Shown here: one piece after another, positions 19,480 through 63,472 of the stretch
Position numbering within the stretch: the first letter of the stretch is position 1
Layout: every line of letters begins with the position of its first letter
NCBI GenBank assembly: GCA_002269645.1
Contig: NIVC01000137.1
Span: 124,001 to 188,000 of the forward strand
DNA length: 64,000 nt
Direction: 5' to 3'
Source: Macrostomum lignano
Taxonomy: Eukaryota
Translations under genes and position numbers: made by a program
The notes under the pieces: model-generated
Databases searched by the model: none
What the model was told of the DNA's origin: nothing
The model's input: only the letters and a program-made list of their open reading frames with translations

Positions 19480-19855
19480 GACAAATCTTGAATCCCAAAT
19501 CCCAAATCACGAATCGCAAGTCCCAAATCACGAATCCCTATCTCTGATTCAAAATCTTGAATCCCAAATCCCAAATCACGAATCCCAAATCCCAAATAAC
19601 AAATCCCTATCTCTGATTCAAAATCTTGAATCCCAAATCCCAAATCCCAGTCTGATTCAAAATCCCTAGACCGGAATTCCAAAATCCGAAATCCGAAATC
19701 CGAAATTCTAAATCCCTAATCCCAATCTCTGATTTATAATCTTGAATCCCAAATCCCAAAATCTGAATCCCAAATTCTAAATCCTAAATCCCAAATCCCA
19801 AAATCTGAATCCCAAATTCTAAATCCCAAATCCCAAATCGCAGTCTCTGATTCAA
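19480..19855. repeat. Low-complexity (AATCCC/AATCCCA)-type repeat with ~60-bp higher-order units
   Basis: Repeated GAATCCCAAATCCCAAAT and TCTCTGATTCAAAATCTT blocks. Confidence 0.85.
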
Positions 19856-20344: not shown

Positions 20345-21430
20345 TTAACATACAGTTACGTACATGTAGTTATAGAAATGATCAATCATTACTACATGTA
20401 GGTAATTTAGCTGCAGCGGAGGCTGGGAAAGCTGCCTTGAGCCAGCAGCTGCAGCGGAGGCTGGGAAAGCTGCCTTGAGCCAGCAGCTGCAGCGGAGGCT
20501 GGGAAAGCTGCCTTGAGCCAGCAGCTGCAGCGGAGGCTGGGAAAGCTGCCTTGAGCCAGCAGCTGCAGAGGAGGCTGGGAAAGCTGCCTTGAGCCAGCAG
20601 CTGCAGCGGAGGCTGGGAAAGCTGCCTTGAGCCAGCAGCTGCAGCGGAGGCTGGGAAAGCTGCCTTGAGCCAGCAGCTGCAGCGGAGGCTGGGAAAGCTG
20701 CCTTGAGCCAGCAGCTGCAGCGGAGGCTGGGAAAGCTGCCTTGAGCCAGCAGCTGCAGCGGAGGCTGGGAAAGCTGCCTTGAGCCAGCAGCTGCAGCGGA
20801 GGCTGGGAAAGCTGCCTTGAGCCAGCAGCTGCAGCGGAGGCTGGGAAAGCTGCCTTGAGCCAGCAGCTGCAGCGGAGGCTGGGAAAGCTGCCTTGAGCCA
20901 GCAGCTGCAGCGGAGGCTGGGAAAGCTGCCTTGAGCCAGCAGCTGCAGCGGAGGCTGGGAAAGCTGCCTTGAGCCAGCAGCTGCAGCGGAGGCTGGGAAA
21001 GCTGCCTTGAGCCAGCAGCTGCAGCGGAGGCTGGGAAAGCTGCCTTGAGCCAGCAGCTGCAGCGGAGGCTGGGAAAGCTGCCTTGAGCCAGCAGCTGCAG
21101 CGGAGGCTGGGAAAGCTGCCTTGAGCCAGCAGCTGCAGCGGAGGCTGGGAAAGCTGCCTTGAGCCAGCAGCTGCAGCGGAGGCTGGGAAAGCTGCCTTGA
21201 GCCAGCAGCTGCAGCGAGCTGTACGAGTTGAGCAGCTCATCTTTGATTGCAGCGCACTGCCGGTTGGCCTCGCACCAGGTGAAATCTTGAGCAGTGCTCA
21301 CGAACACGCACCCGCCTGCCTCTGGGCTGAAGGGATTCGGACACGCCAGGGCCCGCACTGCAGGCAGCAACTGGATTACAATGCCGGAAAGCGCTTGAAA
21401 CGCGTGGAAGTTGCTGAACGAATATTTCAT
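20345..21430 (-). pseudogene. C-type lectin gene copy A, truncated: signal peptide, N-half of the CTLD, then a translated 38-bp minisatellite
   Basis: MKYSFSNFHAFQALSGIVIQLLPAVRALACPNPFSPEAGGCVFVSTAQDFTWCEANRQCAAIKDELL is a signal-like leader plus a CTLD start. The C-half seen in copy B is absent. The frame stays open through the array (361 aa). Confidence 0.7.
20407..21214. repeat. 38-bp minisatellite, 21 units, almost perfectly homogeneous
   Basis: Unit GCAGCTGCAGCGGAGGCTGGGAAAGCTGCCTTGAGCCA. 21205-20407 = 798 = 21 x 38. Confidence 0.97.
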
Positions 21431-22291
21431 CCTTGTTTTTCAGAGACAGCTGGGATTTTTTGATGGGAAAATTTCTACAAGCAGGTTTGAGTATGGTTGA
21501 GACTTATAAACAGCTAACAGATGTAGCTCCGTCCAATAGCAGTTCTAATAAATGCTTTTAGCCAATGACTTTATCAGTATATGTCGTCCTGGGTTTGCGA
21601 TTGTTTTTTTACATCTCGTGATCTCCCTAACTCGATACTTTAAATACAGCAGCTCATATTTTAGCGTGAGCTCTCGTGTTTCTGAGTGCCTTAAAATTAA
21701 TCAGAGATTTTTGTGTATTCCAATTTAATATTCGCTTCTCAGGGATGCGCTTAAAATGTGCTACACTGTACTTATGTAGCTATAAGAGAAGTTCGCGCGA
21801 ATACGTCAATTTTAATGAAAAGAAATAGGATTACAATTTACAACAATGGCTATGTATTAGAGTAAAAAATAGCTACTATAGCGATAAATTTTGAAACAAC
21901 ACAGACATTTGTAACTAAAACTATAAGATCTAACAACTAACATGTAACTAGTGAATTTATCATTTCTAAATCAATGACAGCTCGTATTTGAATAATGTAC
22001 CAATCAAAAATATTAAAGATGAAAATCTAATTTAATGCTAAGGTTGAATTTATAGTGAAAACGTTTAAAATATAGAAAATTTTTAGAAAAACACACACAA
22101 GTAACACGTAAAACTATGGAATTATGGGACAGAATAACGTTAAAAAAGTCAGGTCATAGTACACTTCTGAAAAAAAATTTAATATTCCTAGGTAGGTTAA
22201 GTAAATTCTGTAACACACCATGCAAAGGCGGTACTGAGCTATTTCTATTTTCAAAACTGCAGTTCACTCATCTATGCATTAGCTGCTGCTG

Positions 22292-25012
22292 CTAGTTCAT
22301 TTCGCCTGTGAAATGGACCTCTTTTTTGGTAATGATGGCCTGGCGATCAGCCCCCAGGCCACATTCGGTGCTGCCAGAGCACCAGCAGCAGAAGCAGCAG
22401 TGTGAGCAGTAAGCCGCATCTCTGCTCGGGCAGCAGCAGCGGATCCATCCTGGCAGCAGCATTCTGATGAGAAACAAGCAGATGGAGACAGCGGACGTGA
22501 TGGGAAATGAATCTAAGTTGTTGAATGTGTTACTCAAAGTTTGTCTGAGCCAAAGTTGAAAATAAATCAATCCAACAATAATCCCAAAGTCAGTTATGCT
22601 TTCAATCGAACTCCAGCTCATCCGTTTGCGAGTAATCTCGAGCGGCTTGTGACGACAGCATCCTGAGCACAGGGCTTCGACGAAGTGCAGTCCGATCAAG
22701 ATGAGTAAGCAGACCCCAACAATGCTGGCATAGACAATTATGATGAGCTGCTCCCATGGACAGTTGCAATCTTCATCAAAAATATGAAAACACAGCGGAG
22801 ACTTCAGAAGGTTCTGAGTTGTGCAATTATCATTTTTAAATAGCGGCGTCGCCACAGCAAAAATTTTTAATAACCGGAAATTCGTCACCAAAAACGACAG
22901 CACACGAAATGTGCCCCAAAAGAAATTCCAGCAAGCAGATATTGTACCCGAAGTCTGCTTTTTCGCGTCAATGAAATCGCTGGGTTCGTCGTTAAACGCA
23001 AGCAACTCAACCTGGTCGAAGGTTACGATTGCTTCGAGTTGCTCAACTTGCTTAGGTTGCACACCTTGCTCGTTTTGCACATCTTGCTCATGTTGCACAT
23101 CTTGCTCATGTTGCAAATCTTGCTCATGTTGCACACCTTGCTCATGTTGCACATCTTGCTCGTGTTGCACATCTTGCTCATGTTGCACATCTTGCTCGTG
23201 TTGCACCTCTTGATCATGTTGCACATCTTGCTCATGTTGCACATCTTGCTCGTGTTGCACCTTTTGATCATGTTGCACATCTTGCTCATGTTGCACATCT
23301 TGCTCGTGTTGCACATCTTGCTCATGTTGCACATCTTGCTCATGTTGCACATCTTGCTCATGTTGCACATCTTGCTCATGTTGCACATCTTGCTCGTGTT
23401 GCACATCTTGCTCATGTTGCACAGCTTGATCATGTTGCACATCTTGCTCATGTTGCACATCTTGCTCATGTTGCACATCTTGCTCATGTTGCACATCTTG
23501 CTCATGTTGCACATCTTGCTCATGTTGCACAGCTTGATCATGTTGCACATCTTGCTCGTGTTGCACATCTTGCTCATGTTGCATACCTTGTTTAGGTTGC
23601 TTAAGTTGCCCTTTATCATTATCTATAGGCTTCGTATATCGGTAGGTTATGCCTTTGTAAACGCAATCATCTGTACTCGGATTAACAATCTCCGTGATAA
23701 TCATATGGTACGGAGTACCCTGCTCCGGGCTTACTTCGACGTGTTCACCGACTCTAAATTCATGACCGTTGGATATCGCTGGTTGACAGCATTTCGAGCC
23801 GCAGCAAAGCGAACTCCAGCAACGGCAGCAACGGCAGCAACTGCAGCAACGGTCGCCAGCCCATGGCAGCAGCTCAATGTCATCTAGCGTAGGAGTTGTT
23901 GACTGTTGCAGCCAGTTGCAGAAGGTCTTGCTATCGATTTTACTCTGAACTGTGCCACGACGATTCAACCAGATGGACTTGCCGATCAATTCTTTTGTCT
24001 TTTCTTCGAAGAATTCTTTTGCAGTCTCTGCAGTCTCTTGAGAAACGGCCGAGAGGCCGAAGCTCTTGATTTCTTGATTTCTTGTTCCTGATTTTACTTC
24101 GACTTTCTGAACCGTAAAGAAGTATAAGTATTCCTTATAACGTTTACAACAGCACGAAGTGTCTTCACTGCAACACGAAGTGTCTTTACACAAGCTGTCT
24201 ACAGTAAGTACCACATGCGATTTATCCTGGTGTCTGAGCTCAGTGCCCTTGGACAAAAAAGTTAACAGTTTTGCATCAATAAGTGCATATCTTTTTCTTT
24301 CACTTGCGTTTTTACTTGCGTTTTTACTTGCGTTTTCACTTGCGTTTTTACTTGCATTTTTACTTGCGCTTTTACTTGCGTTTTCACTTGCGTTAAAAAC
24401 GCTTTTCAGTTGATCAATTGACTTGACTGGAATTTCAAAATACTTCTGGTTGTCGCAGTGCTTGGTGCAGCACCAGCGAACGAAGTCCTGGTCATTGTTC
24501 CATTTGGAATCGTACTTGCGTTCGCCAATGCGAGAGATCGCACGTTGCAGCACCTGCTTTGGTTTCACTTTGACTCCATTACTGCATTTGTATTTCAGCT
24601 TGTACAAGCGCTGTCGCCTGGTGTCCAGCCAGAGTGTCTTCCGTGCGACAACTTTTGGCTGACAGCCGAAGATTGTCAGAAAAAGCTTTATAAGCCATAC
24701 AAAAATTTTATAGTCGCACAACTGTCGAATCGCTGCCGTATCGGATCTATAAGTTATGACTTCGATTTTGTAGCGAGCGCGGCGGTTTTGATTAGTTTTG
24801 ATTTGTTCGGAATTGTGAAGATCTTTGGCAACGATTGCGTAATCAGTATTCCATCGGCTAGTGCAGGCAATGGCGGTGCCTTTCTCCAGATATGGTTCTT
24901 CTGTATTGTTTTGTGCTTCTGGCTCGTTTGCGTTGTTTGGATTGTTTGGCAGAATTCGGACTTCTGGCTCGTCTCGTCTTCCTGGCTGGTCAGAGCTTCC
25001 GAATTGGTCCAT
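22292..25012 (-). CDS. Large membrane protein, copy A: LRAT/NC-like pseudo-catalytic domains, NASx repeat, HEQDVQ repeat, C-terminal TM helices and Cys-rich tail
   Basis: Single open frame of about 906 aa. The ATG at 25012 follows a CAG acceptor at 25019-25021. KPKQVLQRAISRIGERKYDSKWNNDQDFVRWC resembles the LRAT C-terminal motif (..VV.RA.SR.GE..Y....NNCEHF..WC). There are 3-4 hydrophobic segments near the C-terminus. Confidence 0.75.
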   Translation of the reverse strand: MDQFGSSDQPGRRDEPEVRILPNNPNNANEPEAQNNTEEPYLEKGTAIACTSRWNTDYAIVAKDLHNSEQIKTNQNRRARYKIEVITYRSDTAAIRQLCDYKIFVWLIKLFLTIFGCQPKVVARKTLWLDTRRQRLYKLKYKCSNGVKVKPKQVLQRAISRIGERKYDSKWNNDQDFVRWCCTKHCDNQKYFEIPVKSIDQLKSVFNASENASKSASKNASKNASENASKNASKNASERKRYALIDAKLLTFLSKGTELRHQDKSHVVLTVDSLCKDTSCCSEDTSCCCKRYKEYLYFFTVQKVEVKSGTRNQEIKSFGLSAVSQETAETAKEFFEEKTKELIGKSIWLNRRGTVQSKIDSKTFCNWLQQSTTPTLDDIELLPWAGDRCCSCCRCCRCWSSLCCGSKCCQPAISNGHEFRVGEHVEVSPEQGTPYHMIITEIVNPSTDDCVYKGITYRYTKPIDNDKGQLKQPKQGMQHEQDVQHEQDVQHDQAVQHEQDVQHEQDVQHEQDVQHEQDVQHEQDVQHDQAVQHEQDVQHEQDVQHEQDVQHEQDVQHEQDVQHEQDVQHEQDVQHEQDVQHDQKVQHEQDVQHEQDVQHDQEVQHEQDVQHEQDVQHEQDVQHEQGVQHEQDLQHEQDVQHEQDVQNEQGVQPKQVEQLEAIVTFDQVELLAFNDEPSDFIDAKKQTSGTISACWNFFWGTFRVLSFLVTNFRLLKIFAVATPLFKNDNCTTQNLLKSPLCFHIFDEDCNCPWEQLIIIVYASIVGVCLLILIGLHFVEALCSGCCRHKPLEITRKRMSWSSIESITDFGIIVGLIYFQLWLRQTLSNTFNNLDSFPITSAVSICLFLIRMLLPGWIRCCCPSRDAAYCSHCCFCCWCSGSTECGLGADRQAIITKKEVHFTGEMN
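23060..23585 (-). repeat. Coding 18-bp repeat (HEQDVQ, about 30 units)
   Basis: The plus-strand unit TTGCACATCTTGCTCATG repeats in frame within the copy A ORF. Confidence 0.95.
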
Positions 25013-28000
25013 TGAAATCTGCAAAGATTTAAAGGTGATTCCATTAGCTAAAGTTAAAGTTCAGATTCAAGAAATGATAGTTTCAGCTGCCTATTGCACC
25101 TCAAAGCAATAGTGGCAAGTGGCAACAGAATTTCAATTGTTGTTAAAACAAATTTTCTTTTACGCTATTATTAGTAGTCGAGGCTTGTGAAAATGATATA
25201 GTAGCTGAAATGAGAAGGGATTTGCGGGTTTCTGAAGTTGGGATTTCTTTCCCAATTTCTTTGCAATTTCTTTCCCTATTTCTTTGCAATTACTTCGGCC
25301 CTCGGCTTTGGTTTATGGGGTGTACCTGGAATTCTGGACTGCAGTGTGGCTACGAGTAGAACGGGACTTGAGCCCCTTAATCGCACCCGCCCTGCAGGAA
25401 AGACGACCATTCACAAAGTTGATGCCAGCCCTGAGGCTGAGCCCCTGAGGTTGTGTGATCCTCCTTATTGTTTTTATCCCTGCCTTTGTGGCCTTTTATC
25501 CTTTGTGTTTTTATCTTGGCACTTGAGCCACCCAATATTTGGAGTTGCAAATCTCGCCTCGGTGAGGGCGCTCTATAGCTTTGGTCCACCTGCTGTCTCC
25601 TCTGGAAGTTCCCTGCTTTTGTGTCTCGGCTCTCATCTCTGACAGTGGATTGGAGTCCTGGTGAATAAGTTCGTCCCGATTCGGGAAAACCGGCTGAGTC
25701 CGGGTTCCTCTTGCTGACCTTGTGCCCTATCCAACCCCTTGGCCTAGCCCTTATTGAGCTGGATAGCGAAAAAGCCTTGAGGCTCGCAACCCTATAGGTA
25801 TAGAAGGGTCTCCTGTCTGACAGGATCGACTCGCCCTTGGCAATAAGCTTCCAGACTCGCTCCAATAGATAAGTATTTTTCCGTAGACTTAGGATATTGT
25901 CTCTCTCGGACCGCTTATACATATACTCCAATATTGTTTAGAGCTGGGTATTGAAAAAATTAAAAATTCTCGCGCACCCTCTGGTTTTGTCGTTGGGGAG
26001 GGTGGCTTTGGTGGACTCGGTCTTAGCACCGTCCCTGATTCCACTATGGGTTGGAGGTGTCTTAGTCCAAAGGTTTGAGCTAGTAGCCCCAACAAGGTAT
26101 TTCTACCAGGCCTTGTTCCTGGTCCCAATCCCTGGCCGCTCGGGCTTATTGCCCTTGGTAGATGCGACCCTGATCTCTAGCGGCAGAGCCCTTCTTTGGG
26201 CTGATCCGCCGGAGCCCCTAGGCTACCCACCCTCGTTCAACAACAACAACGTCTAGGATTCAGTAATATCAGTGGCAGAATTTTTACAATTCGAACTATG
26301 AGCTAATTACAACGAGTAATCTATCAAGGATAAAATTAAAATTTACAGTAATTAGTAACCTAGATCAGAAAGCCACCATCCCTGAACAATGTGACAATGT
26401 CCAATGGCCTCGTAAAATCCAGAACCGAACCAGTCTATTAGAACCGTAAAAAGTATCCGTTCCACCATGATCTTACTTCACGGTACTCGCTTGACAACTT
26501 ACTTGTACTTCGTAATTTGTTGAACTACCAGCTGCCATTGGTTAAATCAAGTGTTAATTAAGAGTAAAACAAAGTTCAACAAATTGTCAGATTTTAAGCT
26601 TCAAGATTTTAACACTTATGATAATTTTTGCAAACGCTTTTTCTATTTTCTGAAGAGTAGCCTCTAAGATACGAACGCTGCTAAAGAAGGTTACTTCTAG
26701 CTTGGGGGTGAGAAATAGACAAGTTGTATTGCATTTTATTATGCTTTAAATTTGATTTGGTTTGCATGGGTGCGTGCACCTGTGAAAATCAGCTTTAGTG
26801 ATCAGCCAATCCCTGCCGCCTCTGTGGATCCGTGTGGGGTGGGGTGAGGGGGGGGGGCGTCGCCCCGCCACGACCCCTGGCCTTTTTAGTGAGCCGTCTC
26901 GATGGGCAACTGGCTCAATTTACGCGCGATCCGTCTGCCTAAAATTTTGTTGCTTTGGGTTGGGAGGCCGCTTTGTTATCGCCGTTCGCTTGCATACACG
27001 TTTGCAAAGTCTTTCCACTATCTAATCTTCTTCTTTTCAATCTAAATGTACTAAATCTCTAAGGTTTGTATGCTTGCCTTCTATCTTCTTCTACCTTCTA
27101 CCTATACTAAATCTATGCGTCTATTTAGAACGCTTCACAGTCTGAAAGCCTGAATCAATTTTTATCGCGTTTTCACAAAAAAAGAAAATCAGTCAAGGAT
27201 TGTATGGTTCGATTTTGTCAATAGGCTTTAACGCAAAGAGTATTAAATATTCGAAAACGAGTTTCTCCTATGCCTTCAATGGAAGACTAGAAAAAGTCAA
27301 AGGGCCCGTTCTATAAAGATAAGATCGTTCTTAGCTTCTGTCTCTGCTGTGTAGAAGTTCTGACGTACGAGTTCGATAAAACTTACGCTACGACAGCTTT
27401 AATATACGACCCCAAAATCTCTGACTGACTGAATTTCAATTCCAATTGAGTTCGCGCCATAACTTCTCTCTCGCCGCTTTGTTGGCCTACTGGCTGCATG
27501 CAGTGAGCAAGGGAGCTAGGAATGCTCAGTGGCTGCGTGTGTACAATTCTGACCCTGACTGACTGGCGGACTGCATAGACAATTGCTATTTATAGATTTC
27601 ACACAACTGTACATTGGCTCTGCCTGCACACAACCTGTGTACACTGAGCAGCCAATCACTGCTATGTATTTTCGACTGCAGTGCCAAAGCATATATGGCT
27701 GATTTTATCGCCCTCTGATCATGCAGAAGACACTAGGACTTGGATTAGGCTAGGCGTAAGGTCCCAGGTTCGAGTGAGCCTACTGAGGACAATTAAAATT
27801 GAATTGATTCATCATTCATTTGTAGCTACTTGAAAACGTTTGAATTATTTTTGCACAAGTCGTTTAGCAAATTTCATTTTTAAAAACTGCTTCGAGTATT
27901 ACTGATTCCATCATAGTATGAAATTGCCAAACTGCAGACGATGCTGCTAATCTGCTGAAGGTATCGCTAGACGCTGTGTTGTGTAGAAGAACTGCCGATA

Positions 28001-28319
28001 TGTATCGAAAATTAATTAGTGAGCCGTAATAAATGCTGAGCAAATTTTTATATTGTTGAAAGAATCATTGCAGTTTACTGAGGAGACTGAGTAGCCGGCC
28101 GAGAGGAGAACTGCTGACTGCTAAGGGCTAAATGAAAACTGTTAAGAGAACATTAAAATACTTTCCTTCAAGAATAGCCTTATTGTAGGCAGAGAGGAGC
28201 AGGTTAAGCAGATGGTCCGCAGTTCGAATCTGCATTGAAGCAGAGAATTTATCTCTGTACCTGTGACAATGATTGTCTCCCTTGCAGTTTCATGCAGATT
28301 TTGGGGGGGGGGGAGAAGT

Positions 28320-29030
28320 GTTAATCTGGGCAGTGCTAATCTGGGGGTAGTGCTAATCTGGGGGAGCAGTGCTAATCTTGGGGAGCAGTGCTAATCTGGG
28401 GGAGCAGTGCTAATCTGGGGGAGCAGTGCTAATCTGGGGTAGTGCTAATCTTGGGGCAGTGCTAATCTGGGGGTAGTGCTAATCTGGGGGAGCAGTGCTA
28501 ATCTGGGGTAGTGCTAATCTTGGGGCAGTGCTAATCTGGGGGTAGTGCTAATCTGGGGGAGCAGTGCTAATCTGGGGGAGCAGTGTTAATCTGGGCAGTG
28601 CTAATCTGGGGGTAGTGCTAATCTGGGGGTAGTGCTAATCTGGGGGCAGTGCTAATCTGGTGGAGCAGTGCTAATCTGGGGGTAGTGCTAATCTGGGGGA
28701 GCAGTGCTAATCTGGGGGAGCAGTGCTAATCTGGGGGAGCAGTGCTAATCTGGGGGAGCAGTGCTAATCTGGGGGAGCAGTGCTAATCTGGGGGAGCAGT
28801 GCTAATCTGGGGGAGCAGTGCTAATCTGGGGTAGTGCTAATCTGGGGTAGTGCTAATCTGGGGGTACTGCTAATCTGGGGGTACTGCTAATCTGGGGGTA
28901 GTGCTAATCTGGGGGTAGTGCTAATCTAGGGTAGTGCTAATCTGGGGTAGTGCTAATCTGGAGTAGTGCTAATCTGGGGTGTGGGGCTAATCTAAGGGAA
29001 GCAGTGTTAATCTGGGGGAGTATAGTGCAA
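28320..29030. repeat. 17-19-bp minisatellite (GTGCTAATCTGGGGGAGCA / GTGCTAATCTGGGGTA)n
   Basis: Tandem units sharing the core GTGCTAATCTGGGG. Confidence 0.93.
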
Positions 29031-30151: not shown

Positions 30152-31950
30152 CTAGAGCGTTCCTGTCCGGGCGTCGGTGAACAGCAGCAGGCGGCAGGCT
30201 CTCAGCTTGCTGTTGTACAGCACGTGTCTGCAGTTGCCCGATCTCATGCCAGCCGCTACGCACTTCATTGCACTGCCAACCTGCAGCAGGTCAGAGTAGC
30301 AGTAGCGAGAGCTGGGCTTGTAGCTGGTGCGCTTGAACGGAGTTCGCTTCCACGAGGCAGCGGAGCCAGTCGGCCCAGTCTGAAGTTCACCTTTGGCAAC
30401 AAACTCGCAAGCGTAGCCACGACGGGTTGAACATTTTAAATCCTTGAGTAGCTCCCTTCCTTCAGACTGCACCAAGCAGTTCTGATTCCCATTGTTAGAA
30501 GGCATATTTGAAGGCCACAAAGCATTATCGAGGGGCAAAATTCCATTGCCGTTGATCTTCGCCCAGCCGGACCTGCTTGTGTTCCGTTCATCGGCCCTGT
30601 CACTGACTCCGAGCCACAGGGAGCAGCTGCAGCGGAGGCTGGGAAAGCTGCCTTGAGCCAGCAGCTTCAGCGGAGGCTGGGAAAGCTGCCTTGAGCCAGC
30701 AGCTGCAGAGGAGGCTGGGAAAGCTGCATTGAGCCAGCAGCTGCAGAGGAGGCTGGGAAAGCTGCCTTGAGCCAGCAGCTGCAGAGGAGGCTGGGAAAGC
30801 TGCATTGAGCCAGCAGCTGCAGAGGAGGCTGGGAAAGCTGCCTTGAGCCAGCAGCTGCAGAGGAGGCTGGGAAAGCTGCCTTGAGCCAGCAGCTGCAGAG
30901 GAGGCTGGGAAAGCTGCCTTGAGCCAGCAGCTGCAGAGGAGGCTGGGAAAGCTGCCTTGAGCCAGCAGCTGCAGCGGAGGCTGGGAAAGCTGCCTTGAGT
31001 CAGCAGCTGCAGAGGAGGCTGGGAAAGCTGCCTTGAGTCAGCAGCTGCAGAGGAGGCTGGGAAAGCTGCCTTGAGTCAGCAGCTGCAGAGGAGGCTGGGA
31101 AAGCTGCCTTGAGCCAGCAGCTGCAGAGGAGGCTGGGAAAGCTGCATTGAGCCAGCAGCTGCAGAGGAGGCTGGGAAAGCTGCCTTGAGCCAGCAGCTGC
31201 AGAGGAGGCTGGGAAAGCTGCCTTGAGTCAGCAGCTGCAGAGGAGGCTGGGAAAGCTGCCTTGAGTCAGCAGCTGCAGAGGAGGCTGGGAAAGCTGCCTT
31301 GAGCCAGCAGCTGCAGAGGAGGCTGGGAAAGCTGCCTTGAGTCAGCAGCTGCAGAGGAGGCTGGGAAAGCTGCCTTGAGTCAGCAGCTGCAGAGGAGGCT
31401 GGGAAAGCTGCCTTGAGCCAGCAGCTGCAGAGGAGGCTGGGAAAGCTGCCTTGAGTCAGCAGCTGCAGAGGAGGCTGGGAAAGCTGCCTTGAGTCAGCAG
31501 CTGCAGAGGAGGCTGGGAAAGCTGCCTTGAGTCAGCAGCTGCAGAGGAGGCTGGGAAAGCTGCCTTGAGTCAGCAGCTGCAGAGGAGGCTGGGAAAGCTG
31601 CCTTGAGTCAGCAGCTGCAGAGGAGGCTGGGAAAGCTGCCTTGAGTCAGCAGCTGCAGAGGAGGCTGGGAAAGCTGCCTTGAGCCAGCAGCTGCAGCGGA
31701 GGCTGGGAAAGCTGCCTTGAGCCAGCAGCTGCAGCGAGCTGTACGAGTTGAGCAGCTCGCCTTGAATTGCAGCGCACCGCTGGTTGGCTTCGCACCAGGT
31801 GAAATCTTGAGCAGTGCTCACGAACACGCACCCGCCTGCCTCTGGGCTGAAGGGATTCGGACACGCCAGGGCCCGCACTGCAGGCAGCAACTGAATTACA
31901 ATGCCGGAAAGCGCTAGAAACGCGTGGAAGTTGCTTAACGAATATTTCAT
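30152..31950 (-). pseudogene. C-type lectin plus PAN/apple-like domain gene, copy B, interrupted by a 29-unit 38-bp array
   Basis: The 5' part matches copy A. The 3' part reads LWLGVSD...WPSNMPSNNGNQNCLV...KDLKCSTRRGYACEF (CTLD C-half), then CYSDLLQVGSAMKCVAAGMRSGNCRHVLYNSKLRACRL (PAN-like). With one repeat unit the halves join in frame. With 29 units they are frameshifted, and variant units introduce TGA. Confidence 0.75.
30623..31734. repeat. 38-bp minisatellite, 29 units, with variant units
   Basis: 31725-30623 = 1102 = 29 x 38. Variants: GCGG>GAGG, GAGCCA>GAGTCA, GCCTT>GCATT. Confidence 0.97.
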
Positions 31951-32766
31951 CCTTGTTTTTCAGAGACAGCTGGGATTTTTTAATGGGAAAATTTCTACAG
32001 GTAGGTTTGAGTATGGTTGTGACTTATAAACAGCTAACAGATGCAGCAGCCCTGTCCAATAGCAGTTCTAATAAATGCTGTTAGCCAATGACTTTATCAG
32101 TATATGTTGTCTTGGTTTTGCGATTGTTTTTTACATCTTACAAATTTTAGTTTGAGCTCTCGTGTTTCTGAGTGCCTTTGAATTAATCAGAGATTTTCGT
32201 GTATTCCAATTTAATATTCGCTTCTCAGGGATGCGCTTAAAATTTGCTACACTGTACTTAATAACTCGTATGTAGAGAAGTTCGCGCGTACACGTCAAAT
32301 TTAATGAAAAGAAATAGGATTGATGCATTGCCAGCAATGTATTAGAGTAAAAAATAGCTACTAGCGATAACTTTTGAAGCAACACAGACATTTGTAACTA
32401 AAACTATAAGATCTAACAGCTAACATGTAACTAGTGAATTTATCATTACTAAATCAATGAAGGCTCGTATGTGGAATAATTTACTAATCAAATATACTAA
32501 AGATGAAAATCTTGTTTAATGCTAAAGTTGAAATTTATAGTGAACACGTTTAAAATATAGAGAAATTTTAGAAAAACACACACAAGTAACACGTAAAACT
32601 ATGGAACTATTGGAGAGTCAGTAACGTTAAAAAAGTCAAGTCATAGTACACCTCTGAAAAAATTTTATTATCTTTTCCTAGGTCAAGTAAATTCTGTAGC
32701 ATACCATGCAAAGGCGGTACTGAGCTATTTCTCTTTTCAAAACCCAGAAAACTGCAGTTCACTCAT

Positions 32767-35700
32767 CTATGCATTAGCTGCATTAGCTTCATTTTGCCTG
32801 CTGAAAAGGACCTCTTCTTTGGTAATGATGGCTTTGTGATCAGCCACCCCGCAACATTCGGTGCTGCCAGAGCACCAGCAGCAGAAGCAGCAGTGTGAGC
32901 AGTAAGCCGCATCTCTGCTCGGGTAGCAGCAGCGGATCAATCTTGGCAGCAGCATTTTGATGAGAAACAAGAGGGTGCCGACAACGGACGCGATGGGTAA
33001 TGAACCTGCGTTGTTGAATGTGTTACTCAGCTTTTGTCTGAGCCAAAGTTCAAAATAAATCAATCCTAAGATAATCAGAAAGTCAGTTATACTTTCAATC
33101 GAACTCCAGCTCATCCGTTTGCGAGTAATCTCAAGCGGCCTGTGACGACAGCATCCCGAGCACAGGACTTCGCAGATGTGCAGTCCGATCAAGATGAGTA
33201 AGCAGATCCCAAGAATGCTGGCATAAATTATTGTGATGAGGTGCTCCCATGGACAGTTGCAGTCTTCATCAAAAATATGAAAACACAGCGGAGGCTTCAG
33301 AAGGTTCTGAGCGGTGCATTTATCATGTTTAAACAGCGGCGCCGCCACAGCTAAAATTTTTAATATCCGAAAATTCGTCACGATAAACGACAGCACACGA
33401 AACGCGACCCAAAAGCAATTCCAACAAGCAGATATTGTACCCGAAATCTGCTTGTTCGCGTCACTGAAATCGCTGGGTTCGTCGTTAAACGCAAGCAACT
33501 CAACCTGGTCGAAGGTTACGATTGCTTCGAGTTTAGGTTCCTCACCTGGCTTAGGTTCCTCACCTGGCTTAGGTTCCTCACCTGGCTTAGGTTCCTCACC
33601 TGGCTTAGGTTCCTCACCTGGCTTAGGTTCCTCACCTGGCTTAGGTTCCTCACCTGGCTTAGGTTCCTCACCTGGCTTAGGTTCCTCACCTGGCTTAGGT
33701 ACCTCACCTGGCTTAGGTTCCTCACCTGGCTTAGGTTCCTCACCTGGCTTAGGTTCCTCACCTGGCTTAGGTTCCTCACCTGGCTTAGGTTCCTCACCTG
33801 GCTTAGGTACCTCACCTGGCTTAGGTTCCTCACCTGGCTTAGGTTCCTCACCTGGCTTAGGTTCCTCACCTGGCTTAGGTTCCTCACCTGGCTTAGGTTC
33901 CTCACCTGGCTTAGGTTCCTCACCTGGCTTAGGTTCCTCACCTGGCTTAGGTTCCTCACCTGGCTTAGGTTCCTCACCTGGCTTAGGTTCCTCACCTGGC
34001 TTAGGTTCCTCACCTGGCTTAGGTTCCTCACCTGGCTTAGGTTCCTCACCTGGCTTAGGTTCCTCACCTGGCTTAGGTTCCTCACCTGGCTTAGGTACCT
34101 CACCTGGCTTAGGTTCCTCACCTTTATAACGGTAGGTTATGCCTTTGTAAACGCAATCATCTGTACTCGGATTAACAACCTCCGTGATAATCATATGGTA
34201 TGGAGTACCTTGCTTCGGGCTTACTTCGACGTGTTCACCGACTCTAAATTTACGACCGTTGGATGTCGCTGGTTGACGGCACTTCGAGTCACAGCAAAAA
34301 AAACGGCAGCAACGGCAGCAACTGCAGCAACGGTCGCCAGCCCCTGGCAGCAGCTCAATGTCATCTAGCGTGCGAACTGTTGACTTTTGCAGCCAGTTGC
34401 AGAAGGTCTTGCTATCGATTTTACTCTGAACTGTGCCACGACGGTTCAACCAGATTGACTTGCCGATCAATTCTTTTGTCTTTTTTTCGAAGAATTCTTT
34501 TGCAGTCTCTTGAGAAACGGCCGAGAGGCCGAAGCTCTTGATTTCTTGATCTATTGTTCCTGGTTTTACTTCGACTTTCTGAACCGTAAAGAAGTATTTA
34601 TAACGTTTACAACAACACGGAGTGTTATTACAACAGCACGAAGTGTCTTCTCTGCAAATTTTACAACAGCACGAAGTGTCTTCTCTGCAACTTTTACAAC
34701 AGCACGAAGTGTCTTCTCTGCAACTTTTACAACAGCACGAAGTGTCTTCTCTGCAACTTTTACAACAACACGAAGTGCTACTACTGCAACATGAAGTGTC
34801 TTTACACAAGCTGTCTACAGTAAGTACCATATGCGATTTATCCTGGTCTTTGAGCTCATTGGCCTTGGACAAAAAAGTTAACAGTTTTGCATCAATAAGT
34901 GCATATCTTTTTCTTTCACTTGCGTTTTCACTTGCGTTTTTATTTGCGTTTTCACTTGCGTTTTCACTTGCGCTTTTACTTGCGTTTTCACTTGCGCTTT
35001 TACTTGCGTTTTTACTTGCGTTTTTACTTGCGTTTTCACTAGCGTTTTTATTTGCGTTTTCACTTGCGTTTTCACTTGCGCTTTTACTTGCGTTTTCACT
35101 TGCGTTTTTACTTGCGTTTTCACTTGCGTTTTTACTTGCGTTTTCACTTGCGCTTTTACTTGCGTTTTTACTTGCGTTTTTACTTGCGTTTTCACTAGCG
35201 TTTTTATTTGCGTTTTCACTTGCGTTTTCACTTGCGTTTTCACTTGCGTTAAAAACGCTTTTCAGTTGGTTCATTGACTTGACTGGAATTTCAAAATACT
35301 TCTGGTTGTCGCAGTGCTTGGTGCAGCACCAGCGAACGAAGTCCTGGTCGTTGTTCCATTTGGAATCGTACTTGCGTTCGCCAATGCGAGAGATCGCACG
35401 TTGCAGCACCTGCTTTGGTTTCACTTTGACTCCATTACTGCATTTGTATTCCAGCTTGTACAAGCGCTGTCGCCTGGTGTCCAGCCAGAGTGTCTTCCGT
35501 GCGACAACTTTTGGTCGACAGCCGAAGATTGTCAGCAAAAGCCTTATAAGCCATACAAAAATTTTATAGTCGCACAACTGTCGAATCGCTGCCGTATCGG
35601 ACGTATAAGTTATGACTTCGATTTTGTGGCAGGAGCGGCTGTTTTTATTAGTTTGTTCTAGGTCGGAAGGGCAAATATTTTTAGCAACTATTGCGTAATC

Positions 35701-35898
35701 AGTATTCCAACGGCTAGTGCGGGCAATTGCAGCGCCTTCCTGCAGAATTGCGTCTTCTTGATTGTTTTGTCCTTCTGGTTGGTCAGAGCTTTTGACTGCG
35801 GTGCCTTCCTGCAGAATTGCGTCTTCTTGATTGTTTTGTCCTTCTGGTTGGTCAGAGCTTTTGACTGCGGTGCCTTCCTGCTGGTCGACTTGGACCAT
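32767..35898 (-). CDS. Large membrane protein, copy B (paralog of 22292-25012): LRAT/NC-like pseudo-domains, expanded NASx, CCKSCREDTS and GEEPKP repeats, TM helices
   Basis: Open 1043-aa frame, collinear with copy A outside the repeats. The ATG is preceded by a CAG acceptor at 35906-35908. Confidence 0.78.
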   Translation of the reverse strand: MVQVDQQEGTAVKSSDQPEGQNNQEDAILQEGTAVKSSDQPEGQNNQEDAILQEGAAIARTSRWNTDYAIVAKNICPSDLEQTNKNSRSCHKIEVITYTSDTAAIRQLCDYKIFVWLIRLLLTIFGCRPKVVARKTLWLDTRRQRLYKLEYKCSNGVKVKPKQVLQRAISRIGERKYDSKWNNDQDFVRWCCTKHCDNQKYFEIPVKSMNQLKSVFNASENASENASENANKNASENASKNASKNASKSASENASKNASENASKNASENASKSASENASENANKNASENASKNASKNASKSASENASKSASENASENANKNASENASERKRYALIDAKLLTFLSKANELKDQDKSHMVLTVDSLCKDTSCCSSSTSCCCKSCREDTSCCCKSCREDTSCCCKSCREDTSCCCKICREDTSCCCNNTPCCCKRYKYFFTVQKVEVKPGTIDQEIKSFGLSAVSQETAKEFFEKKTKELIGKSIWLNRRGTVQSKIDSKTFCNWLQKSTVRTLDDIELLPGAGDRCCSCCRCCRFFCCDSKCRQPATSNGRKFRVGEHVEVSPKQGTPYHMIITEVVNPSTDDCVYKGITYRYKGEEPKPGEVPKPGEEPKPGEEPKPGEEPKPGEEPKPGEEPKPGEEPKPGEEPKPGEEPKPGEEPKPGEEPKPGEEPKPGEEPKPGEEPKPGEEPKPGEEPKPGEVPKPGEEPKPGEEPKPGEEPKPGEEPKPGEEPKPGEVPKPGEEPKPGEEPKPGEEPKPGEEPKPGEEPKPGEEPKPGEEPKPGEEPKPGEEPKLEAIVTFDQVELLAFNDEPSDFSDANKQISGTISACWNCFWVAFRVLSFIVTNFRILKILAVAAPLFKHDKCTAQNLLKPPLCFHIFDEDCNCPWEHLITIIYASILGICLLILIGLHICEVLCSGCCRHRPLEITRKRMSWSSIESITDFLIILGLIYFELWLRQKLSNTFNNAGSLPIASVVGTLLFLIKMLLPRLIRCCYPSRDAAYCSHCCFCCWCSGSTECCGVADHKAIITKEEVLFSRQNEANAANA
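33534..34122 (-). repeat. Coding 18-bp repeat (GEEPKP, about 33 units)
   Basis: The plus-strand unit GGTTCCTCACCTGGCTTA is near-perfect, with occasional GGTACC (E>V) variants. Confidence 0.95.
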
Positions 35899-36789
35899 TG
35901 AAAACTGCAGAGAGTTTAAGGCGATTCAATTAGTTAATTTAAAGTTTATCTTCAAGAAAATGATAAATAAATCAGTTTCAGCTGCCTATCGCGCCTCAAA
36001 GCAATAGTGGCAAGTTCAACAAAATTTCAGTTGTGATATACCCTGTAGGGCAGGTTGTTAAAACAAATTTGCTTTTACGCTACTACTTACTAGTAGTCCA
36101 GGCTTGTGAGAATGTTAGTAGCTGGAATGAGAAGGGATTTTAGTATATAGGATTTGTGGGTTTCTGAGGTTGGGATTATATTTAGACAGGCTTTATTGAA
36201 ACTTTCTTTAACGTTTTGTTGTTAAAACGAGGTGCCGTAGAAATCGGCGCGAGTCAGTTTCGAAGAACTCTGCCGCTGTATTAGCTTAGCTATTGCTTTA
36301 TTTGATCGAAGGAATTTAAAATATTTACAGATCTCGATTTGAATATTTATCGAAATATTGAAATAAAAATATAAATGAATAAAACTATTTTTCAATATTT
36401 TGCAGTATTTTGCACGCATTTGGGGATGAAAAAAGAGGGGAGGGGAATCCCGCACAAAGAATGGATCTGATAAAAAGAGGTAATCTAAGAAAAACGTGGT
36501 AGAATATTTGAAGGCCTGTCAAATGTAAAAAAGCGGCTGTTGAGTAAACATAGAAAATGAAATGCGGCAGCGCATATTTGGATATACATGTATAAGTGCT
36601 ATAAGTAGCTAGAGGTGTAAAAAGAGCAATTAGGAATATTTGTAAAGCAGTTGGGTAAAAAAACACAATTTGAGCAATGTAAAAAAGAACACATGGAGAG
36701 ATCAGAGGTCACCTATTAGTCCTATGTCTGATCAACCGATCTCTGTCTGAGGCAGCGAGCTTAGTTTTATTTAATAGTATAGAGACGAA

Positions 36790-39700
36790 TGACGGCCGGA
36801 TGATGCTGTGCTGAAGTTGAAACAGTCTGATAGCGACCGGAAGCCGTGCAGCAGGTGCTTGTCATCTCGACACCTACCTAGCTAATGTCCGTTTGTAAAC
36901 AGGCGCTGCTTCAACTGCAACAAGACTGGGCACGCATCCAAGGCATGCAAGCAACCGCGTCAGCAGCAGCAGCAGCAGCATCAGCAAGCTCACCAGGTCG
37001 AGGAAGGAAGCGATCAGGAGACGCTTGGAACCACCTACTTCCTCTATCACATCGTCAATGCGAAGAAGCCAAGTAAAGTCCCGCCCTACACAACTCATCT
37101 GCTGATCGACGGGAAGGACTGCGAGATGGAAATTCAGGTATTCAGGTATTCAACACGTATTCAGGCCAGGCCGTCGAGATCCTTGGCAGACTGATCGTCC
37201 ATGTCAAAGTAGCGGCACAGGATAGTCACTTACAGCTGCCACTGCTAGTTGTGGCGGGCAGCGGACCGAATCTCTTCGGCAGGGACTGGCTGCACAGCCT
37301 TCGCCTGGACTGGCGGTCAGTTTAACGACTGTCGTCAACGGCTTCCGATATCGAAAAAGTGCAGCGCGAGTTCCCCCGAGGTGTTCAAGGAACTGGGGAC
37401 ATTCAGCGGCGCCCCTCTATCTATTCCCATCAAGGAAGAAGCGCGTCCTCGGTTTTTCAAAGCCCGCTCCGAGCCCTTCGCACTGAAACTGAAAGAGAAG
37501 GTGGAGCAACAGCTACGCAAGGAGATCAGCCAGGGGATTCTGCAACCGGTAAAGTCGTCCGACTGGGCATCGCCGATCGTCCCTGTGATGAAGTCTGACG
37601 GCGGGCTCCGGGTGTGCGCCGACGTCAAGCAGACCCTGAACGCCGCCGTAGAACCGGACGGCTACCCGCTGCCCAACATTGACAAACTCTTCTCACGACT
37701 GTCACGCGGGACGAAGTTCTCGAAGATTTATCTCAGCCAGGAGTTTCAGCAGCTTCCGTTGGACGAGGCCGCTCAAAAGTTGTGCACTATCAACACCTCA
37801 CTGGGGCTGCTGCGCTACAAACGACTGCCGTTTGGGGTTTCAACGGCTCCCAGCATATTCCAGCGCGTCATGGACGGTCTACTCGTCGGCATTGAGCACT
37901 GCGCAGCCTTCATGGACGACGTTATCATTACTGGTCAAGACGAAGCGAGTCATTTGAGGAACCTGCGGAAAGTCCTGACTGTGTTAAGGACGCGGGACTC
38001 ACTTGCAGCGCGAAGAAGTGCAGCTTTATGCAGGACTCAGTGGTCTACCTTGGCCATCTAATCGACGCTGAAGGCCTGCATCCTCTGCAAGATAAGGTGG
38101 AAGCGATCATCGCGGCGCCACGGCCGCAGAACTGCACTCAGCTGCGCAGCTTATTATGGCAAAGTCAATTATTATGGCAAATTCCTTCCGCGGCTGTCCG
38201 ACACTCTGGGGCCGCTGCACCAGTTGCTCAACAAGGACACTAAGTGGCGCTGGGACCAACCACAGGAAGGGGCGTTCGCCAGGTGTAAGCGCCTGCTGTC
38301 CGACCCTGGGGTCCTAGTGCACTACGACGCATCTCGCGAGGTCTTCTTGGAATGTGACGCCTCCGAGTACGGCCTGAGTGCTGTCATCTTCCACCGCATC
38401 GACGACTCAGACAGACCTGTTGCCTACGCTTCCAGAACGCTGAGCTGGAGAAGGAGGCCCTGGCCCTGGTATTTGGGGTGAAGAAATTTCACCACTATAC
38501 TTGCTCGGCAGAGAGTTCGGGCTTCTCACCGACCACAGGCCTCTCGGCCTCTCCTAGGGCTGCTCGGCCAGGCAAGCCGATCCCAGCTCTGGCGTCCGGA
38601 CGAGTGCAACGCTGGGCGCTCCTGCTGTCGGCCTACCGCTACCACCTGGTTCACCGTAAGGGCTCCTTCCTCCCTGTTGAGAGCCGACGCTTTGAGCCGC
38701 CTGCCGTTGCCCGAGTGCCCTGCTGCCGTGCCCGTCACTCCGGAGGTGGCTCTGGTGATGGACAGCCTGGACTCCTCTCCCGTCTCCTCCGCTGATGTGC
38801 GGGACTCGACGGGACCCGCAGCTGTCGCAGGTCGTCCACTTCTGCCTGTCCGGACGCTGGCCGGAGCCGGTCCCGCCTGAGTTGATGCCATTCAGCGTCA
38901 GGGCTCATGAACTGTCAGTGCACGACGGCTGTCTCCTTTGGGTAGCCGCGTGGTGATCCCTCCTACCGACCGGCGCCAGCTGCTGCAATGTCTCCATCAA
39001 GGCCACACAGGCGCTACTCGTATGAAGGCACTCGCCAGGAGCAGCATCTGGTGGCCCAACATGGACAAGGAGATCTAGGGGTCGGCCGCCGGCTGCATGG
39101 AGTGCCAGAAGCTACGCCCGGATCCGCCTGCTGCGCCACTTCTGCCGTGGCCAGCCCCAGCCGCGCCTTGGCTATGGGTTCATGTGGATTTCGTCGGCCC
39201 CGTAAACAACCGCATGCTGTTTGTCATCGTGGACGCGTTTTCAAAGTGGCTGGACGTGCACATCACGAATTCAACGACCTCGGCCACAGCCATCGACAAG
39301 TTGAGGCAATCGTTTACCACTCACGGGCTTCCGGAAACGCTCGTCTCGGACAACGGGCCCTGCTTTGTCAGCAGCTTCGCCGACTTCTGCAGTCGCAATG
39401 GCATTCGGCCCATCCGGACGCCACGGCTACCGGACATTTGCCCTCCGGCATTTGCCCTCCGGACATTTGCCCTCCGGCATTTCCCCTCCGGACATTTGCC
39501 CTCGAGGACATTTGCCCTCGGGGACATTTGCCCTCCGGACATTTGCCCTCCGGACATTTGCCCTCGGGGACATTTGCCCTCGGGGACATTTGCCCTCCGG
39601 ACATTTGCCCTCCGGACATTTGCCCTCGGGGACATTTGCCCTCGGGGACATTTCCCCTCCGGACATTTGCCCTCCGGACATTTCCCCTCTGGAAAAGTAC

Positions 39701-40960: not shown

Positions 40961-41001
40961 CTAGCAGTCGCTCAAGTTTTTCTCGAGAAGTTTTAACTTA
41001 C

Positions 41002-58358: not shown

Positions 58359-63472
<5,114 letters not shown>

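Follow-up and report, generated by a model that had tools for sequence, protein, structure and literature searches.

Tandem single-exon genes of the flatworm Macrostomum lignano are predicted to encode membrane proteins with degenerate, probably non-catalytic LRAT/PLAAT modules

Two paralogous genes, here called p1 and p2, are located on the minus strand of a 64,000-nucleotide (nt) stretch of the Macrostomum lignano genome (assembly GCA_002269645.1, contig NIVC01000137.1, positions 124,001 to 188,000 of the forward strand; this whole stretch is referred to as the window, and positions are counted from its first letter). It appears reasonably likely that both are real, tandem-duplicated membrane-protein genes whose products carry arrays of degenerate LRAT/PLAAT modules that are non-catalytic and have a binding role. 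The first module (unit 1) is shown, by sequence profiles and a predicted structure, to have the circularly permuted papain-like (NlpC/P60) LRAT/PLAAT fold, and all three of its catalytic positions are substituted. The canonical triad is present in none of the p1/p2 units. Coordinates of the features are collected in Table 1.

The family assignment of unit 1 was based on several kinds of comparison. The excised unit passes the curated cut-off of the Pfam LRAT family PF04970 (24.3 bits), with 25.9 bits for p1 and 25.8 bits for p2 (E 1.3e-5), and covers profile positions 54-116 of 120, while in scans of the full-length proteins p1 gives no match and p2 is sub-threshold at 22.8 bits; membership is borderline, and is reinforced by transitive matches. 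A total of 63 LRAT-like units were cut from p1/p2 and their relatives and aligned, and a 51-unit profile with unit 1 of p1 as its first sequence matched PLAAT3, PLAAT2, PLAAT4, and an HRASLS3/LRAT chimera in PDB (E 1.6e-7 to 2e-4), with in-register alignments that span the entire domain. Only the profile succeeded in this, as phmmer searches of PDB sequences with unit 1 and with a mollusc unit returned no matches. Word-indexed homology searches with unit 1 and with the 51-unit alignment were also without matches, the latter result being uninformative since an exhaustive search did retrieve relatives. An AlphaFold2 model of unit 1, computed from the alignment of LRAT-like units, reached a predicted local distance difference test (pLDDT) score of 79.7 and a predicted template modelling (TM) score of 0.73. 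Six of its seven best Foldseek matches in PDB are PLAAT structures (PLAAT3, HRASLS2, AdPLA, HRASLS3, H-REV107, and PLAAT4), with probabilities of 0.99-1.0, target-normalised TM scores of 0.66-0.70 (0.70 for PLAAT3 7zom), and root-mean-square deviations of 3.5-4.8 Å; the best viral match is Catovirus LRAT.

An earlier reading of the DNA from its letters alone (hereafter the sequence-only reading) had proposed an LRAT domain in both paralogs, and had suggested a comparison by AlphaFold and Foldseek and named a lack of both profile and structural matches as the result that would speak against it. Both kinds of match were found, in the form of PF04970 on the excised unit, phmmer hits to M. lignano LRAT proteins, PDB profile matches, and PLAAT structures at the top of the Foldseek list. 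The peptides that it quoted are all encoded on the minus strand in both paralogs. With regard to the interval that it gave for the domain, 24550-24950, this contains Asp57 and Thr87, but the NNDQDF motif (24479-24496) lies about 60 nt outside, and the unit extends from about 24458 to 24889.

The catalytic triad of PLAAT3 consists of His23, His35, and Cys113 (PMC7140883). Human PLAAT3 was added to the 63-unit alignment to map the corresponding columns, which, as the sequence-only reading had stated, are occupied by Asp, Thr, and Asp in unit 1 of both paralogs; the codons are identical as well. Among the 63 units, the His-His-Ser state was found in 21 and His-His-Cys in 9, and Asp-Thr-Asp occurs only in p1 and p2. 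The homologue of unit 1 is degenerate in all of the larger Macrostomum paralogs (K/Q/E/T at the first His, S/Y/F/M at the second His, and S/R/G/D at the Cys), so that loss of the unit 1 triad predates the subfamily comprised of p1, p2, and their closest relative, P0001, and Asp-Thr-Asp is merely the local state of an already dead unit. Retention of the first His in the unit-1 homologue of these paralogs was considered and rejected, because the conserved His is the second of an HH pair and corresponds to the PLAAT3 W24 position. Catalysis in the LRAT family depends on an acyl-thioester intermediate. Since unit 1 has no Cys-His-His triad, such chemistry should be impossible there, and phospholipase A/acyltransferase activity is predicted to be absent from this unit. 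In addition, the second-His strand of unit 1 is separated from the strand after it by a hydrophobic insertion; only p1, p2, and P0001 have this insertion, for which AlphaFold2 predicts a helix (residues 75-88 of the model).

Relatives were collected by an exhaustive phmmer search with amino acids (aa) 37-470 of p1 against 1.84 billion proteins, which gave 19 matches. The best of these, P0001 (A0A1I8HFC8), is an uncharacterised M. lignano protein of 680 aa with 51% identity (E 1e-79) and is collinear with p1 over aa 41-881; a word-indexed search with P0001 returned only itself. Another M. lignano entry, P0002 (A0A1I8H6L1), is a 70-aa fragment with 87% identity to the N-terminus of p1 and points to a third p1-like copy that may be truncated, disrupted, or mis-modelled. 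It holds two residues encoded 5′ of the p1 ATG and breaks off abruptly after YKIE inside unit 1. Seven further M. lignano matches (826-1379 aa, E 1e-14 to 4e-10) are labelled as hypothetical or "LRAT domain-containing", and the more distant matches include bivalve proteins. Pfam LRAT scores of nine relatives range from 35 to 64 bits in seven and are sub-threshold in P0001 (20.0) and P0008 (21.8).

Each of the larger Macrostomum proteins is built from 5-6 units; in most full-length members the final unit contains NNCEHF, and membrane helices come after it. After P0001, the closest relatives are the multi-LRAT proteins PAA47238 (P0004), PAA65928 (P0005), PAA47239 (P0006), and PAA52141 (P0009), with E-values of 1e-14 to 1e-10, which also occur in tandem clusters (two genes on one contig). 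p1, p2, and P0001 have counterparts of only the final three units of these proteins: unit 1 corresponds to the WN[NS]SxDF[AV]RWC unit, unit 2 to the ..S.DFC.WLK unit, and unit 3 to the terminal unit. In contrast to the larger proteins, they lack the terminal NNCEHF and have gained the hydrophobic insertion and poly-Cys clusters, while long repeats are present in p1/p2 only. Judged from these alignments, p1, p2, and P0001 are a short, triad-less branch of the Macrostomum multi-LRAT family.

In multi-LRAT proteins of bivalves and other organisms outside Macrostomum (P0010, P0011, P0014, and P0016), most units have both His residues and a Ser at the Cys position, in the motif GN[RTS]SxxF, and there is usually one Cys unit per protein. 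The bivalve examples (Potamilus KAK3603616/P0010 and Mercenaria XP_053378500/P0011), which are distant from p1 (E 5e-7 to 9e-7), are many-unit arrays with one His-His-Cys unit, the rest being mostly His-His-Ser; they differ from p1 in that the active unit is N-terminal and followed by membrane segments, and in that the dead units keep both His residues. The His-His-Ser units may represent either a variant that uses a serine nucleophile or a widespread dead state. A literature search on Macrostomum LRAT, tandem LRAT domains, and PLAAT/LRAT pseudoenzymes gave no paper on multi-LRAT proteins or these genes.

The other two units of p1 and p2 are more divergent, and Pfam scans gave no LRAT match for either. 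For unit 2, profile-profile comparisons by hhalign between independent sequence sets provided a two-step chain: unit 2 of p1, p2, and P0001 matched, at E 3.6e-6 and 87% probability, the last unit but one of the larger Macrostomum proteins, and this penultimate unit matched non-Macrostomum (mollusc) LRAT units (E 5.4e-6, 99 columns, in register). Unit 2 is thus probably LRAT-derived, as the sequence-only reading had supposed. Hidden Markov models (HMMs) built from the corresponding paralog units found it weakly (E 0.006). Ser361 occupies its Cys column (DSKTFCNW), and His266 is at the probable first-His position according to a by-eye match of KSHVVLTVD with YSHHAILRD, a stretch that MAFFT aligned otherwise; His266 exists only in p1 and p2, as P0001 has no His in unit 2.

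Unit 3 is in register with the terminal NCEHF unit of the paralogs (HVEV~HIIL, YHMIITEI~VHFIVTKW, YKGITYRY~GVGMTYEF, and DFIDAK~DQIDAK). Its hhalign support is weak (E 0.015 against paralog terminal units and 0.001 against mollusc units), and HMMs from the paralogs' terminal units alone did not find it in the window. Together with collinearity, these matches suggest that unit 3 is plausibly LRAT-derived; the third unit of the sequence-only reading, placed from RVGEHVEV to YHMII, is accordingly supported weakly, by in-register profile matches and collinearity. In the MAFFT alignment, p1, p2, and P0001 all lack the CEHFVN stretch. His436 is kept in all three (YHMII/FHLII), and Cys694 (SACWNF) of p1/p2 lies within 3 residues of the expected Cys place, where P0001 has no Cys (NLDWLW). 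A single-sequence AlphaFold2 model of a spliced unit 3 construct had a pLDDT of 55, its only confident element being a long helix at about aa 678-721. No LRAT-like units other than those of p1/p2 were found in the window.

Table 1. Features of the p1/p2 locus (positions in the window)
Feature	Position	Strand	Description and basis
p1	22292..25012	-	Single-exon coding sequence, 906 aa, ATG at 25012; open reading frame (ORF) list, translation
p2	32767..35898	-	Single-exon coding sequence paralogous to p1, 1043 aa; BLASTP, alignment
Tandem segmental duplication	copy A 20409..25223; copy B 30622..36140		blastn self-comparison, TRF
p1 unit 1	24458..24889	-	aa 42-185, LRAT/PLAAT-fold domain; Pfam, unit alignment, PDB profile matches, AlphaFold2, Foldseek
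p2 unit 1	35314..35745	-	aa 52-195, carries Asp67/Thr97/Asp184
p1 Asp57, codon GAT	24842..24844	-	PLAAT3 His23 column (YRHWAIY); p1 reads NTDYAIV
p1 Thr87, codon ACT	24752..24754	-	PLAAT3 His35 column (VVHLAPP); p1 reads EVITY
p1 Asp174, codon GAC	24491..24493	-	PLAAT3 Cys113 (NCEHF) column; p1 reads NNDQDF
p2 Asp67/Thr97/Asp184 codons	35698-35700, 35608-35610, 35347-35349	-	Codons identical to p1
Hydrophobic insertion in unit 1	24650..24721	-	About 24 aa, LCDYKIFVWLIKLFLTIFGCQPKV; alignment, hydropathy, AlphaFold2
p1 unit 2	23897..24298	-	aa 239-372, degenerate LRAT-like unit; hhalign, alignment
p1 unit 3, N-terminal half	23627..23770	-	aa 415-462, RVGEHVEV..PYH436MIITEIV..YKGITYRY; alignment, hhalign; weak
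p1 unit 3, C-terminal half	22928..23041	-	aa 658-695, LEAIVTFDQVELLAFNDEPSDFIDAK..SAC694WNF, NCEHF helix deleted/replaced; alignment
(NAS[K/E])n, 12-bp repeat	p1 24298..24394; p2 34914-35250	-	8 copies in p1, 28 copies in p2; TRF, translation
(HEQDVQ)n, 18-bp repeat	23038..23583	-	About 30 copies in the unit 3 loop of p1; TRF, alignments
Poly-Cys cluster	23777..23854	-	CCSCCRCCRCWSSLCCGSKCC (CCSCCRCCRC..), after unit 2; candidate S-acylation site, putative role
Hydrophobic region and Cys-rich tail	22295..22927	-	Tail CSHCCFCCWC; hydropathy

The residues that remain in units 2 and 3 are the basis of the explanation that p1 and p2 are still enzymes, which would have a non-canonical site in unit 3 (His436 with Cys694) or in unit 2 (His266 with Ser361 as the nucleophile), with unit 1 as an accessory module. 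This is considered unlikely. It draws on the larger paralogs, which combine dead modules with one NCEHF module, and on the first-His column, where a His is found in unit 3 of p1, p2, and P0001 and in unit 2 of p1 and p2. The Macrostomum paralogs likewise have Thr at the second-His column of their terminal units, which bear NCEHF, so this residue need not disable a site, and the His-His-Ser state recurs to such an extent that the Cys-to-Ser change is perhaps functional. Moving the 6-7-residue gap from the downstream to the upstream side would bring Cys694 into line with the Cys of NCEHF. However, the 6-residue deletion placed by MAFFT falls exactly on CEHFVN, and P0001 has neither an equivalent of Cys694 nor a His in unit 2, so that these residues are not conserved in the subfamily; the failure of units 2 and 3 to match Pfam LRAT and the modelling of Cys694 onward as one long hydrophobic helix, i.e., a membrane segment, also argue against such a site. 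For the same reasons of ambiguous alignment, the MAFFT deletion, and the missing Cys of P0001, the more specific idea that SACWNF is equivalent to NCEHF and gives unit 3 an active Cys was downgraded. Of the multi-domain inactive membrane protein that the sequence-only reading had described, the multi-modular layout, the hydrophobic C-terminal segments, and a dead unit 1 are borne out, loss of the active site being demonstrated for unit 1 alone; the role of scaffold, decoy, or sensor that it had proposed is hypothetical.

Whether p1 and p2 are living genes was assessed from their divergence. The ratio of non-synonymous to synonymous substitution rates (dN/dS, Nei-Gojobori method) between them is 0.88 over 674 non-repeat codons and 0.75 in unit 1. 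Divergence is mosaic: the proportion of synonymous differences (pS) varies between 0 and 0.24, a pattern suggestive of gene conversion. The 3′ flank has 12 insertions or deletions (indels) in about 1050 nt, of which 9 are not multiples of three. By comparison, unit 1 (526 nt) has no indel between p1 and p2, and units 2-3a have gaps of 9 nt, which keep the frame; the remaining coding gaps (17, 1, and 133 nt) are ends of comparison pieces inside repeats, and the open frames show no frameshift. From the flank rate, 17.5 frameshifting indels were expected and none was observed (P(0)=2.5e-8), and the simulated probability of finding no stop codon is 0.0015-0.03. Between the two copies, the amino-acid sequence and the repeats evolve in a near-neutral manner, and yet the frame is strictly maintained.

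Comparison with P0001 reaches further back. Its identity with p1 amounts to 67-70% for unit 1 (C-terminal half, with the next linker), 60% for unit 2 (C-terminal half), and 35-46% for most remaining parts, and 35 of 39 residues are identical around SRIGERxYDSxWNNxQDFVRWCCTKHCDNxKYFEIPxKS. According to this alignment, constraint is strongest in the helix of unit 1 that formerly held the nucleophile and in the segment that comes next.

It is also conceivable, though quite improbable, that p1 and p2 are young duplicates that evolve neutrally or are becoming pseudogenes, the LRAT-like domain being a functionless relic. A dN/dS of about 0.9, coding substitution divergence (8.5-9.6%) equal to that of the flank, the mosaic pattern, and repeat expansions that are unconstrained and differ between the copies would all suit this explanation, as would the fact that the sole near-identical database entry, P0002, is a 70-aa fragment. 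It is opposed by the two frames of 2.7-3.1 kb, which the sequence-only reading had called intact and which are indeed open over 906 and 1043 codons where about 17 frameshifting indels and several stops were expected, by coding indels and repeat periods (12, 18, and 33 bp) that are all multiples of three, and by the end-to-end collinearity of P0001 with its sharply conserved blocks. Flanking signals are conserved between the copies as well: a splice-acceptor-like (t/c)tgcag (ttgcag in p1) is located 6 nt 5′ of the ATG in both, and AATAAA/ATTAAA follows about 100 nt past the stop in both (108 nt in p1). Given the intact frames and the conserved, collinear P0001, p1 and p2 are judged to be real, fast-evolving genes despite their dN/dS. 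The sequence-only reading had allowed that a dN/dS near 1 without expression would count against it; the first half of this was found, and only the intact ORFs and the conserved P0001 speak for function.

Outside the three units, the two proteins are alike in architecture and different in their repeat expansions. In the unit 3 loop, the HEQDVQ repeat of p1 has as its p2 counterpart a (PGEEPK)n repeat of about 33 copies (33533-34123), and the two families share 61-65% DNA identity. A 33-bp Cys-rich repeat (CCCKSCREDTS, 34628-34790) is expanded only in p2, and none of these coding repeats (NAS[K/E], 18-bp, or 33-bp) is present in P0001. The C-terminus of p1 has a hydrophobic membrane anchor by hydropathy, in the form of a multi-segment region: segments were detected at aa 702-725, 756-774 (the strongest, score 2.96), and 835-853, and a further one at about 815-833 was read by eye, the hydropathy scan passing only its p2 equivalent (931-951). 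No Pfam family was matched by this membrane region, and hhalign detected no similarity between the membrane regions of the p1 subfamily and the larger paralogs (probability 0.4%, E 0.16).

These features have also been weighed as signs that the N-terminal part is extracellular or luminal, with N-glycosylated NAS repeats, hypervariable repeats for recognition (e.g., in reproduction or immunity), and an LRAT-like fold that is merely structural. p1 contains 9 N-x-S/T sequons and p2 contains 22, the majority of them within the NAS repeats, and paralog-specific repeats together with a dN/dS near 1 are typical for fast-evolving recognition genes. Nevertheless, the proteins have no N-terminal signal peptide or hydrophobic start, CCxCC clusters beside hydrophobic segments would be typical of cytosolic S-acylation sites, and known LRAT/PLAAT domains act at the cytosolic face, which makes this explanation very improbable. 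The existence of a host paralog family led to the rejection of chance similarity and of a transposon or viral origin for the genes.

The favoured explanation, that of real genes for non-catalytic LRAT/PLAAT arrays with a binding role, may be described as follows. A large N-terminal part, most likely cytosolic, would consist of three degenerate modules of the LRAT/PLAAT type (H-box/NC, permuted NlpC/P60), with hypervariable low-complexity repeats and poly-Cys clusters between them; the multi-helix hydrophobic region and the Cys-rich tail would come after it. The retained fold, chiefly the conserved ex-nucleophile helix and the next segment, could serve at the membrane as a binding surface, the ligand being a lipid, an acyl chain, or a protein partner. 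The juxtamembrane poly-Cys clusters would be S-acylated, and the proteins might act as scaffolds or regulators of the still-active NCEHF-bearing paralogs.

Several points weigh against this explanation. dN/dS is about 0.9, and the coding mismatch of 5.7-9.6% does not exceed the 8.5% seen in the non-coding 3′ flank, so recent amino-acid constraint is weak. The p1/p2 proteins were not found in the searched protein collections. His266, His436, Ser361 (in the Cys column), and Cys694 (near the expected place) are retained in units 2 and 3, where some residual non-canonical chemistry could persist. The AlphaFold2 model is not independent of sequence homology, being built on the alignment of LRAT-like units, and the Foldseek E-values for unit 1 are modest (7e-3). 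Finally, the cytosolic N-terminus, the S-acylation, and the binding or scaffold role are properties that we infer from the predicted sequences. In a bolder version, rather unlikely and drawn by analogy, p1, p2, and P0001 would be a flatworm-specific clade of obligate pseudo-LRAT membrane proteins, with the triad lost from every module and the ex-nucleophile helix conserved best, that regulate, or present substrate to, the active paralogs in the way that iRhoms relate to rhomboid proteases, perhaps by means of heavily S-acylated poly-Cys clusters; the His-His-Ser modules of lophotrochozoan multi-LRAT proteins would be a serine-nucleophile NlpC/P60 variant.

Among known systems, PLAAT1-5 (HRASLS)/LRAT (PF04970) resemble unit 1 in fold, according to profile and model structure, and in the order of H-box, second-His strand, and NC helix, and they also have a membrane anchor C-terminal to the LRAT-like region. 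However, p1/p2 have three tandem modules instead of one, a 24-aa hydrophobic insertion, long repeats, poly-Cys clusters, and a multi-helix hydrophobic C-terminus in place of a single anchor, as well as Asp/Thr/Asp for His23/His35/Cys113. The vertebrate LRATD1/LRATD2 (FAM84A/B) are LRAT-domain proteins without phospholipase A/acyltransferase activity that have no catalytic Cys and are presumed to be non-enzymatic and associated with membranes or trafficking (PMC7140883, PMC8536394); FAM84B/LRATD2 keeps H23 and H35 and loses only C113 (PMC7140883). They share with p1/p2 unit 1 an inactive LRAT-fold domain, as analogues and not as members of one group. The LRATD proteins are single-module and soluble or peripheral, with Pro-rich regions, whereas p1/p2 have tandem modules with all three triad residues of unit 1 replaced; no specific sequence relationship of p1/p2 to LRATD1/2 was found, and the catalytic losses look independent. 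Picornavirus 2A H-box/NC and giant-virus LRAT proteins belong to the same fold class, with Aichivirus 2A and Catovirus LRAT among the structure matches, albeit weak ones (E 0.005-0.56); since the closest relatives of p1/p2 are host paralogs, there is no evidence of a viral origin. Briefly, the LRAT fold and domain family, inactive LRAT domains, and the automatic "LRAT domain-containing" labels on relatives are already known, while the full triad replacement, the tandem degenerate modules, the hydrophobic insertion, the distinct multi-segment membrane region with poly-Cys, and the paralog-specific coding repeats are new.

The surrounding window is animal nuclear DNA, with ubiquitin-E1 exons, a retroelement, and an ankyrin/ion-transport ORF. 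Two exons of the ubiquitin-activating enzyme E1, at 1006-1632 and 4702-5457 (minus strand), encode ThiF and E1_FCCH domains; intron-containing genes thus adjoin the single-exon paralogs. At 44546-49336 (plus strand), an uninterrupted ORF of 1596 codons encodes many ankyrin repeats and a C-terminal ion-transport domain, resembles a transient receptor potential (TRP)-like channel, and is seemingly intronless, as are p1 and p2. Retroelement remains at 37249-41799, directly beside copy B of the duplication, include a reverse transcriptase (37249-38061) and an integrase core (39097-39723), in a GC-rich stretch (55-60%) crowded with short Pro/Gly/His-rich repeats.

Tandem repeats are abundant in the window. 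A 38-bp minisatellite lies about 1 kb 3′ of each paralog inside the duplicated segment (20409-21216, 21 copies; 30622-31734, 29 copies), with matches of 96-99% within it, and gives rise to long spurious ORFs on both strands. Between the duplicated copies there is a 19-bp repeat of 40 copies (AGTGCTAATCTGGGGGC, 28317-29018), and a degenerate 7-bp AATCCCA array of about 50 copies (19491-19839) is located upstream of copy A. In addition, microsatellite tracts at 58800-59030 and 61989-62880 read as (SIYL)n in several frames, and one of them is a continuation of the ORF at 58359-59030, whose product shows a weak talin-head FERM_f0-like match.

LRAT/PLAAT enzymes remodel membrane phospholipids, and vertebrate LRATD1/2 are one well-known inactive branch of the family; the loss in p1/p2 appears to be independent of that branch and more radical, as all three triad residues are replaced. 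It is found in proteins with tandem modules and a multi-pass membrane region, and most other full-length members of the family retain one intact module. The relatives retrieved here also bring together a large number of uncharacterised multi-LRAT proteins from flatworms and bivalves, among whose modules the Cys-to-Ser type predominates. Until expression and function are shown, the practical significance would be modest; both RNA interference and transgenesis are established in Macrostomum lignano. Together with their NCEHF-bearing paralogs, p1 and p2 may provide a natural active/inactive series in which to ask what a non-catalytic LRAT fold does.

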